Part shown: one piece after another, positions 42,101-42,549 of the stretch | Position numbering within the stretch: the stretch's first letter is position 1 | Layout: every line of letters starts with the position of its first letter | Origin: Setoptus koraiensis | Taxonomy: Eukaryota > Animalia > Arthropoda | Length of the DNA stretch: 64,000 nt | Assembly: GCA_048013815.1 (NCBI GenBank) | Contig: CM106585.1 | Location: 17,112,001-17,176,000 of the forward strand | Direction of reading: 5' to 3' | Notes under the pieces: model-generated | Database searches by the model: none | The model's input: the letters and a program-made list of their open reading frames with translations, nothing else | What the model was told of the DNA's origin: nothing | Program-made: the position numbers and the translations under genes

Positions 42101-42549
42101 TTTTTGTATTGTAAGGAGTAATCTCTACCTATATTTTGAAAATGTTCATCAATATTCGCTCCTTCAAGTTGAGGAACATCTACATCGACGTCGTAAATAT
42201 CGTCGTCTACACTCTTGGACCCCTCTAGCTGGGCCATTGGAATGGTTCCTCTGTTGTTGTCCAGTATATCCAAAAGGTCATGCTGACGCAAATGCTCTAG
42301 GCAACTTTTAACTCGTTCATCCAACAATTCACTTGGAGTCTCCTTTGGACCAAATACTTGTTTGTACAGTTTATCCGGAATCATTTTGATTCCTACCGGA
42401 TTGTACCGGTGGACTGGCGGCGCACAAACATGGGTTCTGAAGAATAACGAGCTGTTAGCTCGTTTCTTCAAATGATTGGCTAATGGTTTCGAAATTTGTC
42501 CAAGTGCTAAAGCTCCCAAATTGGCTGATGGGAAGGCACCAATGGCCAT
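39130..42549 (-). CDS. POLG: Mitochondrial DNA polymerase gamma catalytic subunit, intronless, 1139 aa, with an OPA3-derived N-terminus
   Basis: Exo I FDVET, Exo [10 protein letters not shown], Exo III NYCARDV, Pol A [12 protein letters not shown], Pol B [16 protein letters not shown] and Pol C SIHDEVRY are all intact. Confidence 0.98.
   Translation of the reverse strand: [1139 protein letters not shown]

Follow-up and report, generated by a model that had tools for sequence, protein, structure and literature searches.

A POLG gene start apparently captured from its head-to-head neighbour OPA3

Among the closest described systems, plant genes have gained mitochondrial presequences by duplicating existing targeting signals: the portion of PMC2631504 that reports on Kadowaki et al. 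1996 derives the presequence of rice rps11-1 from atp2, that of Arabidopsis sdh3 from hsp70 and that of carrot rps10 from hsp22. The POLG gene analysed here shares with these cases, as they are described in that portion, a putative N-terminal targeting region that duplicates the N-terminus of another mitochondrial-protein gene of the same genome. The donor is OPA3, and the homology of the two gene starts is evident at the DNA level, over 117 of 141 coding nucleotides and about 220 nt further upstream. Among animals, Par17 of the Hominidae is said to carry a recently evolved mitochondrial prepeptide. Going by the title of the paper on Par17 (PMC2031878), it and this POLG are both animal proteins that have in a recent lineage acquired an N-terminal extension for mitochondrial targeting, a putative one in POLG.

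The window, i.e. the whole 64-kb stretch of DNA that was analysed, carries POLG on its minus strand (39130..42549) as an intronless single open reading frame of 1139 residues, taken from the list of open reading frames. Its ATG at 42549 is the first in-frame ATG, GTG or TTG past the upstream stop, with an A at -3 and a G at +4. The protein is similar over its full length to animal POLG (919 matches at E <= 1e-20) and contains the Pfam domains DNApol_Exo (PF18136; 1e-87) and DNA_pol_A (PF00476; 5.9e-16). For the mature part we obtained an omega of 0.07 against the orthologue of a sister species (protein P0001), a strong constraint which indicates a functional gene in current use, one that would need a leader. 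Head-to-head with POLG, across a gap of 741 nt, lies OPA3 on the plus strand (43291..43800), an intronless gene for a protein of 169 residues that matches the Pfam OPA3 profile (PF07047) with 132 bits (1.2e-38).

The first-pass annotation had noticed that POLG begins like OPA3, and we confirmed the observation as a whole, each of its counts being reproduced. Codons 1-47 of POLG (42409..42549, minus strand) align without gaps to codons 1-47 of OPA3 (43291..43431, plus strand), with 36 of the 47 residues identical; the 24 differences in 141 nt divide by the Nei-Gojobori method into 12 synonymous and 12 non-synonymous ones, with no indels and no stops. The two N-termini gave a Smith-Waterman score of 181 (z = 38 against shuffles). 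The 47 residues include five lysines or arginines and no acidic residue, giving a net charge of +5 and a leader-like composition, and their N-terminal stretch is slightly less hydrophobic than that of OPA3. Directly after residue 47 follows RYNPVGIKM, the first block common to all POLG relatives, again as had been stated. The OPA3 profile itself detects residues 10-56 of POLG with 26.2 bits (gathering cutoff 25.7); this match spans just positions 2-47 of the 121 in the profile. The homology ends after codon 47, and POLG has no complete OPA3 domain, the hydrophobic segment past residue ~80 being missing. On these sequence grounds the POLG is a chimera and not a member of the OPA3 family. No other large protein beginning with residues 1-47 came up in a database search, the index of which was coarse and missed even P0003, the relative discussed below.

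The first-pass annotation had placed the copied stretch at 42409-42549. This part is indeed a copy, but the repeat runs beyond it, as an inverted duplication of about 355 nt that includes roughly 220 nt of DNA upstream of OPA3. The arms, at 42414-42771 and 43074-43426, are 79.8% identical over 362 aligned columns; identity rises to 84–85% over their inner 280 nt, and the few indels fall in the outer part. The copied unit thus delimited takes in the start codon and 47 codons, preceded by about 215–220 nt from upstream of OPA3. Its mirror image covers the upstream region and the first codons of two divergent neighbours, and the ancestral 5' end of POLG is lost. Outside low-complexity sequence the window has no other substantial inverted repeat, and no further inverted 5' duplications were seen there or in the loci of relatives that we examined. 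The non-coding part of the POLG-side arm (42550..42771, minus strand) reproduces in inverted form the DNA upstream of OPA3, with its putative core promoter and 5'UTR, and matches the region upstream of OPA3 in the sister species (contig L001) at 79.6% in reverse orientation. The corresponding part of the donor arm (43074..43290, plus strand) is orthologous to L001 at 81%. Between the arms lies a spacer of about 300 nt (42772..43073), which we compared with L001 by blastn and local alignment: 43034-43073 is still orthologous to the OPA3-proximal intergenic DNA of the sister species, and no counterpart of 42772-43033 was detected in L001 (local alignments were no better than shuffles). An alignment of the L001 POLG and the window OPA3 across the junction places the join with ancestral POLG in frame after codon 47, directly before the RYNP block, with no clear case of microhomology.

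Some features of the arms are recorded here in their own right. A putative 130-nt 5'UTR intron lies upstream of OPA3 (a perfect GTAAGT at 43130-43135, pyrimidine-AG at 43258-43259); in its mirror image, around 42700 on the minus strand, the acceptor side is conserved and the donor GT is changed. A contig of sequencing run X7 begins at 43191, inside this putative intron. The OPA3 upstream arm further holds a 3-codon uORF (ATG AGA AGA TGA; 43210-43221, plus strand). In the POLG arm its TGA has become CGA, giving a 58-codon ORF (42455-42631, minus strand) that overlaps the POLG start in another frame and is relevant only if the POLG 5'UTR extends that far.

The nearest named POLG proteins are those of acariform mites (45–47% identity). 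A closer clade (53–87% identity) comprises 27 POLGs, each full-length and encoded by a single ORF, found on contigs from sequencing runs and metagenomes. The OPA3 relatives include that of the eriophyoid Aceria tosichella, which lies among the others, and intronless genes with tiny spacers match published eriophyoid genomes (PMC7738191); the clade is probably Eriophyoidea. The sister-species POLG, P0001, is 87% identical to that of the window overall and 90% in the mature part (dS between the two species about 0.6–0.8), and on L001 the gene order is the same as in the window, i.e. PSS, OPA3 (divergent), POLG. OPA3 with 256 nt of upstream DNA is orthologous between the two loci (81%), as is POLG from window position 42403 onward (86%). 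The sister-species POLG, by comparison, has a leader of 55 residues unrelated to that of the window, and different DNA upstream of it; for this segment (L001 2015-2493, POLG-proximal intergenic DNA and leader) blastn, tblastn and local alignment against the whole window found nothing above noise. Since the L001 leader and upstream DNA have no counterpart in the window, the OPA3 copy replaced the previous POLG 5' end, in agreement with the earlier proposal that POLG lost its own leader to a duplicated OPA3 start.

All of the approximately 20 relatives with a complete N-terminus have an extension of 25–64 residues before the RYNP block. A POLG start of this kind in outgroups would have spoken against the proposed replacement, as the first-pass annotation had pointed out; the sister species and some 20 other relatives are unlike the window in this respect, and in a test of OPA3-likeness only the window POLG and P0003 stood out, the latter by what is argued below to be a separate capture. 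We also considered whether the 'MISL...KPL' leaders of many relatives, or the sister-species leader, are decayed OPA3 copies, and found no significant resemblance (p 0.04–0.99). Two OPA3 homologues, P0130 (262 aa) and P0167 (216 aa), have 54–62 extra residues before the MAIGAFPL start, which may be open upstream frames or more chimeric starts.

The micro-neighbourhood (Es2)-OPA3-PSS-POLG-cytidine deaminase is conserved across the clade (window 37963-45001; L001, L002, L007 and the contig of P0018), its small genes being inverted or reordered between species. In several members OPA3, PSS, POLG and cytidine deaminase lie a few kb apart with local inversions, OPA3 being 1–3 kb from POLG; members in which OPA3 is far from POLG have ordinary POLG leaders. 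It seems that proximity of OPA3 to POLG is what enables capture.

That the copy ran from OPA3 to POLG, as had been proposed, is supported by the near-invariance of these 47 residues in chelicerate OPA3 (46 of 47 are identical between the window and the sister species). Polarisation with the sister-species OPA3 assigns 11 of the 12 replacements to the POLG copy, which matches the earlier view that most changes lie on that side. The POLG copy thus has 7 synonymous and 11 non-synonymous changes (omega 0.44), against 5 and 1 in OPA3 (omega 0.05), and the relaxed constraint suspected in the copy is well supported. Seven of its replaced residues are near-invariant in chelicerate OPA3 (L8, K10, R17, K32, M43, A46 and Q47), and the POLG copy is clearly released from the constraints on OPA3. 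When 18 random substitutions were simulated with the observed transition share, 11.1 amino-acid changes were expected, as against 10 changed codons observed, and the probability of no stop was 0.54; a binomial test of omega < 1 on the copy gave p = 0.11. The changes are compatible with neutral or relaxed evolution, and a constraint of the copy's own is not demonstrable from them. Leaders usually evolve almost neutrally, and an omega near 0.4–1 is therefore no evidence against use as a leader. As to timing, the non-coding arms carry 12 unique changes in POLG, 11 in the window OPA3 and 24 in the L001 OPA3. Since this rough clock points to a time shortly after the split from the sister species, and the synonymous sites of the 141 coding nucleotides are about equidistant among the POLG copy and the two OPA3 genes, the safe statement is that the duplication would date from that split or soon after.

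The only other relative with an OPA3-like POLG start is P0003 (z = 22), whose POLG is 58% identical to that of the window; the Pfam OPA3 search on relatives that the first-pass annotation had suggested finds it too, with a match below threshold. Its contig, L002, has OPA3 2.6 kb upstream of POLG and oppositely oriented, Es2 and PSS being located between the two. The start of P0003 matches its own OPA3 (tblastn 1.5e-13) and has residues of its own OPA3 lineage (NSHFFRTKVC), not those of the window. Of the 36 aligned residues 28 are identical to OPA3, the copy has a clean 7-codon deletion, and the comparison of the two coding stretches gave a pS of 0.95 and a pN of 0.15. Because synonymous sites are saturated while pN is low, the translated peptide has been kept under purifying selection, and this capture is older than that of the window. 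About 25 nt upstream of the L002 POLG ATG are 80% alike with the DNA upstream of OPA3, which suggests that the 5'UTR was copied too. The L002 POLG frame is also open for 68 codons further upstream (L002:3301-3504, the same DNA as in L006), to an ATG with an arginine-rich start, where one gene caller let the protein begin (P0121, 1196 aa). Because the frame is open to this ATG, the OPA3-like block of L002 POLG could be internal.

Both captures end at OPA3 codon 44-47. In both, Met43 (ATG) has become Ala (GCG) by two nucleotide changes (42421-42423; L002:3601-3603), and Thr29 is changed as well; the parallel change at Met43 may represent parallel adaptation, or the removal of an internal ATG. 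Human OPA3 exon 1 ends at c.142, coinciding with the end point of the captures (PMC3987911). Exon shuffling is unsupported, OPA3 being intronless in the window, L001 and L002, and the spider mite Panonychus citri having no intron at codon 47; the OPA3 of the latter (L008:1501-2018) has a single intron after about residue 103. We read the common end point as the functional limit of a module, not as the outcome of exon shuffling.

We consider it likely that the mirrored OPA3 upstream DNA drives expression of the window POLG, that translation begins at 42549 and that the borrowed peptide serves for import. A local inverted duplication would have copied about 355 nt of the OPA3 5' end (about 215 nt of upstream DNA, the start codon and codons 1-47) and joined the copy in frame to the divergent neighbour POLG, directly ahead of its first conserved block, with loss of the former upstream region and of a leader of the 55-residue type during the capture. 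POLG would now most likely be transcribed from the mirrored upstream copy, with translation starting at the borrowed ATG at 42549, and the borrowed 47 residues would most likely act as its mitochondrial targeting peptide, directing the enzyme to the matrix and presumably being cleaved there. The OPA3 copy is the only candidate extension before RYNP in this POLG. In human cells OPA3(1-30), which is homologous to the captured 47 residues, suffices to bring a PINK1 without residues 1-110 to mitochondria (PMC2811155), and OPA3 has been described as having an N-terminal mitochondrial leader (PMC3987911).

Evidence against this reading comes from the ATGs upstream of 42549, including that of the 58-codon ORF (42631-42455), which would hinder translation if the POLG 5'UTR is long; further points against it are the full compatibility of the 18 substitutions with neutral drift, the use of the human OPA3 N-terminus as an anchor (PMC2811155) and the open frame upstream of the OPA3-like block in L002. 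The same ATGs and overlapping uORF within the copied arm would also suit an account by which the duplication is real and silent at the protein level, the 47 codons being open by chance and POLG being made from Met56 or from a downstream transcript with an internal import signal; the fit of the substitutions to neutrality, and the 54% of cases in which 18 random changes leave the frame free of stops, point the same way. We regard this account as improbable. Met56 (42382..42384, minus strand), the sole alternative in-frame start, is a conserved residue of the mature enzyme within the GIKM block, and the peptide that begins there is acidic (net charge -2, 9 of 47 residues acidic) and not leader-like. 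A leader is present in all relatives whose N-terminus is complete, the ancestral one is gone from the window, and the ATG at 42549 stands in a context of A at -3 and G at +4. In L002 an independent OPA3-derived start has been retained, by the measure of its pS and pN, under purifying selection, and the omega of the window copy does not speak against use in view of the near-neutral evolution of leaders.

Another possibility, to which we give only a small chance, is that the segment is translated and acts not as a cleaved matrix presequence but as a sequence-specific membrane-association or anchor module like that of OPA3, which would tether POLG or reroute its import. OPA3(1-30) was termed an 'outer membrane anchor' in human cells (PMC2811155), and because it was so used the label 'presequence' for the borrowed peptide is provisional. 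The 28 of 36 residues that L002 retains despite saturated synonymous sites are likewise far above the conservation of ordinary leaders. Against an anchor stand the site of POLG action, which must be in the matrix, and the fate of the OPA3 sequence in the two copies. The window copy lost the seven near-invariant residues named above; that of L002 lost M43 and, by its deletion, 7 residues of the hydrophobic stretch; in both, the N-terminal stretch peaks at a lower hydropathy than in OPA3; and neither copy includes the predicted OPA3 membrane segment, which is found beyond residue 47. Compared with the OPA3 N-terminus, then, the POLG copies lack several invariant residues and the whole remaining OPA3 domain. 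Use of the borrowed residues as a targeting peptide, as preferred here, would make the locus a natural test of which sequences can carry a large soluble enzyme into mitochondria, and both loci offer a handle on the disputed role of the conserved OPA3 N-terminus, in a human disease gene, as leader or anchor.

The number of captures was assessed with the POLG tree. There P0003 falls inside a well-supported group, the rest of which has ordinary leaders ending in KTLGQEP (P0011 and P0017, with P0024 and P0008 once their true starts are taken from the DNA). Since P0003 lies among relatives with ordinary leaders, two origins of the OPA3-derived POLG start are required. One might instead suppose that a single ancient capture took place in the ancestor of the clade, that gene conversion maintained the likeness of the copies to the local OPA3, and that most lineages lost them, and the short distance of OPA3 from POLG in several members (1–3 kb), together with the nearly identical end of both captures at codons 44-47, would agree with it. 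We hold this to be very unlikely: the tree would demand many independent losses, in P0003 the leader tail of its subclade (KTFGQEP) still follows the OPA3-derived residues whereas in the window RYNP comes immediately after them, the saturated synonymous sites of L002 imply no recent conversion, and the sister species is without any trace of the inverted arm.

The junction, which the first-pass annotation had wished to see checked in reads, is present in 13.7 kb contigs of two runs from different studies, X1 and X2, which span the whole locus and show no difference over 39050-45040; X1 may be the source of the assembly itself. Run X4 contributes pieces at 41525-42412 and 42387-42735, and the X7 contig covers 42415-42719. 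A mis-joined or collapsed inverted repeat is scarcely credible as an explanation, for all that the repeat is local and inverted and that X4 has a chimeric 56-nt contig close by, given the unbroken X1 and X2 contigs, the X4 and X7 contigs over 42387-42735 and 42415-42719, the reading frame that POLG maintains through the junction, and arms that differ by 15–20%, indels included, as the mis-assembly of one sequence would not yield. Because the arms diverge by 15–20%, a simple assembly artefact is excluded.

The runs that hold the POLG-OPA3 locus are of DNA or have no kind on record, and a search for RNA runs turned up only ones of the latter sort. X4 behaves like amplified DNA: its outer contig ends are those of the DNA runs, its depth is uneven, and one of its contigs is an inverted chimera. 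The chimeric contig, of 56 nt, joins 41529-41554 to 42706-42735 in opposite orientation and is most likely a chimera of whole-genome amplification, not a true rearrangement. In X7, the kind and strand of which are not on record, depth is gene-body-like, higher over OPA3 and PSS than over POLG and absent from the spacer, an RNA-like pattern which is at most a hint of transcription around the borrowed ATG. Only two variants were seen across runs, and neither is coding: X7 lacks 2 nt at 42567, at a distance of 18 nt upstream from the POLG ATG, and X4 has a T>C at 43107, in the OPA3-side arm of the inverted repeat.

A wider conjecture, which we offer tentatively and think rather doubtful, is that eriophyoid genomes generally renew gene starts by short inverted duplications that pass a promoter, a 5'UTR and first codons to a head-to-head neighbour, and that the OPA3 N-terminus is a portable, sequence-specific import element which POLG adopted at least twice. 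If this were true, the near-unchanged state of the L002 module at saturated synonymous sites would point to a dedicated recognition partner, and not to generic presequence physics.

Replication of mtDNA depends on POLG, whose import signal is usually regarded as a fixed part of the gene. Here the neighbour OPA3 has on two occasions supplied a whole 5' module (upstream region, start codon and leader) in place of that of POLG, which would make it a rare animal example of a swapped mitochondrial targeting signal and would show how promoters and protein starts can be rewired in one step in very compact genomes. Literature searched for the targeting of OPA3, for the acquisition of presequences and for inverted duplications of promoters, though not for the pair by name, yielded no report of an OPA3-POLG chimera. 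The Par17 prepeptide is, by the title of its paper, an N-terminal addition, whereas the peptide in the window is a duplicated module of another mitochondrial protein. From the plant cases, as far as the cited portion of PMC2631504 describes them, the locus differs on several counts. The plant recipients were leaderless genes newly moved from the mitochondrial genome, whereas POLG is an ancient nuclear gene in which a working leader appears to have been replaced. Unlike in those accounts, the donor in the window directly adjoins the recipient head-to-head, its copy is inverted and brings the upstream region along, and OPA3 served as donor twice independently in an animal host. What is new in relation to the plant precedent, so described, is thus the apparent replacement of a working animal leader, by a divergent neighbour whose upstream region was carried along, in two captures from the same donor.
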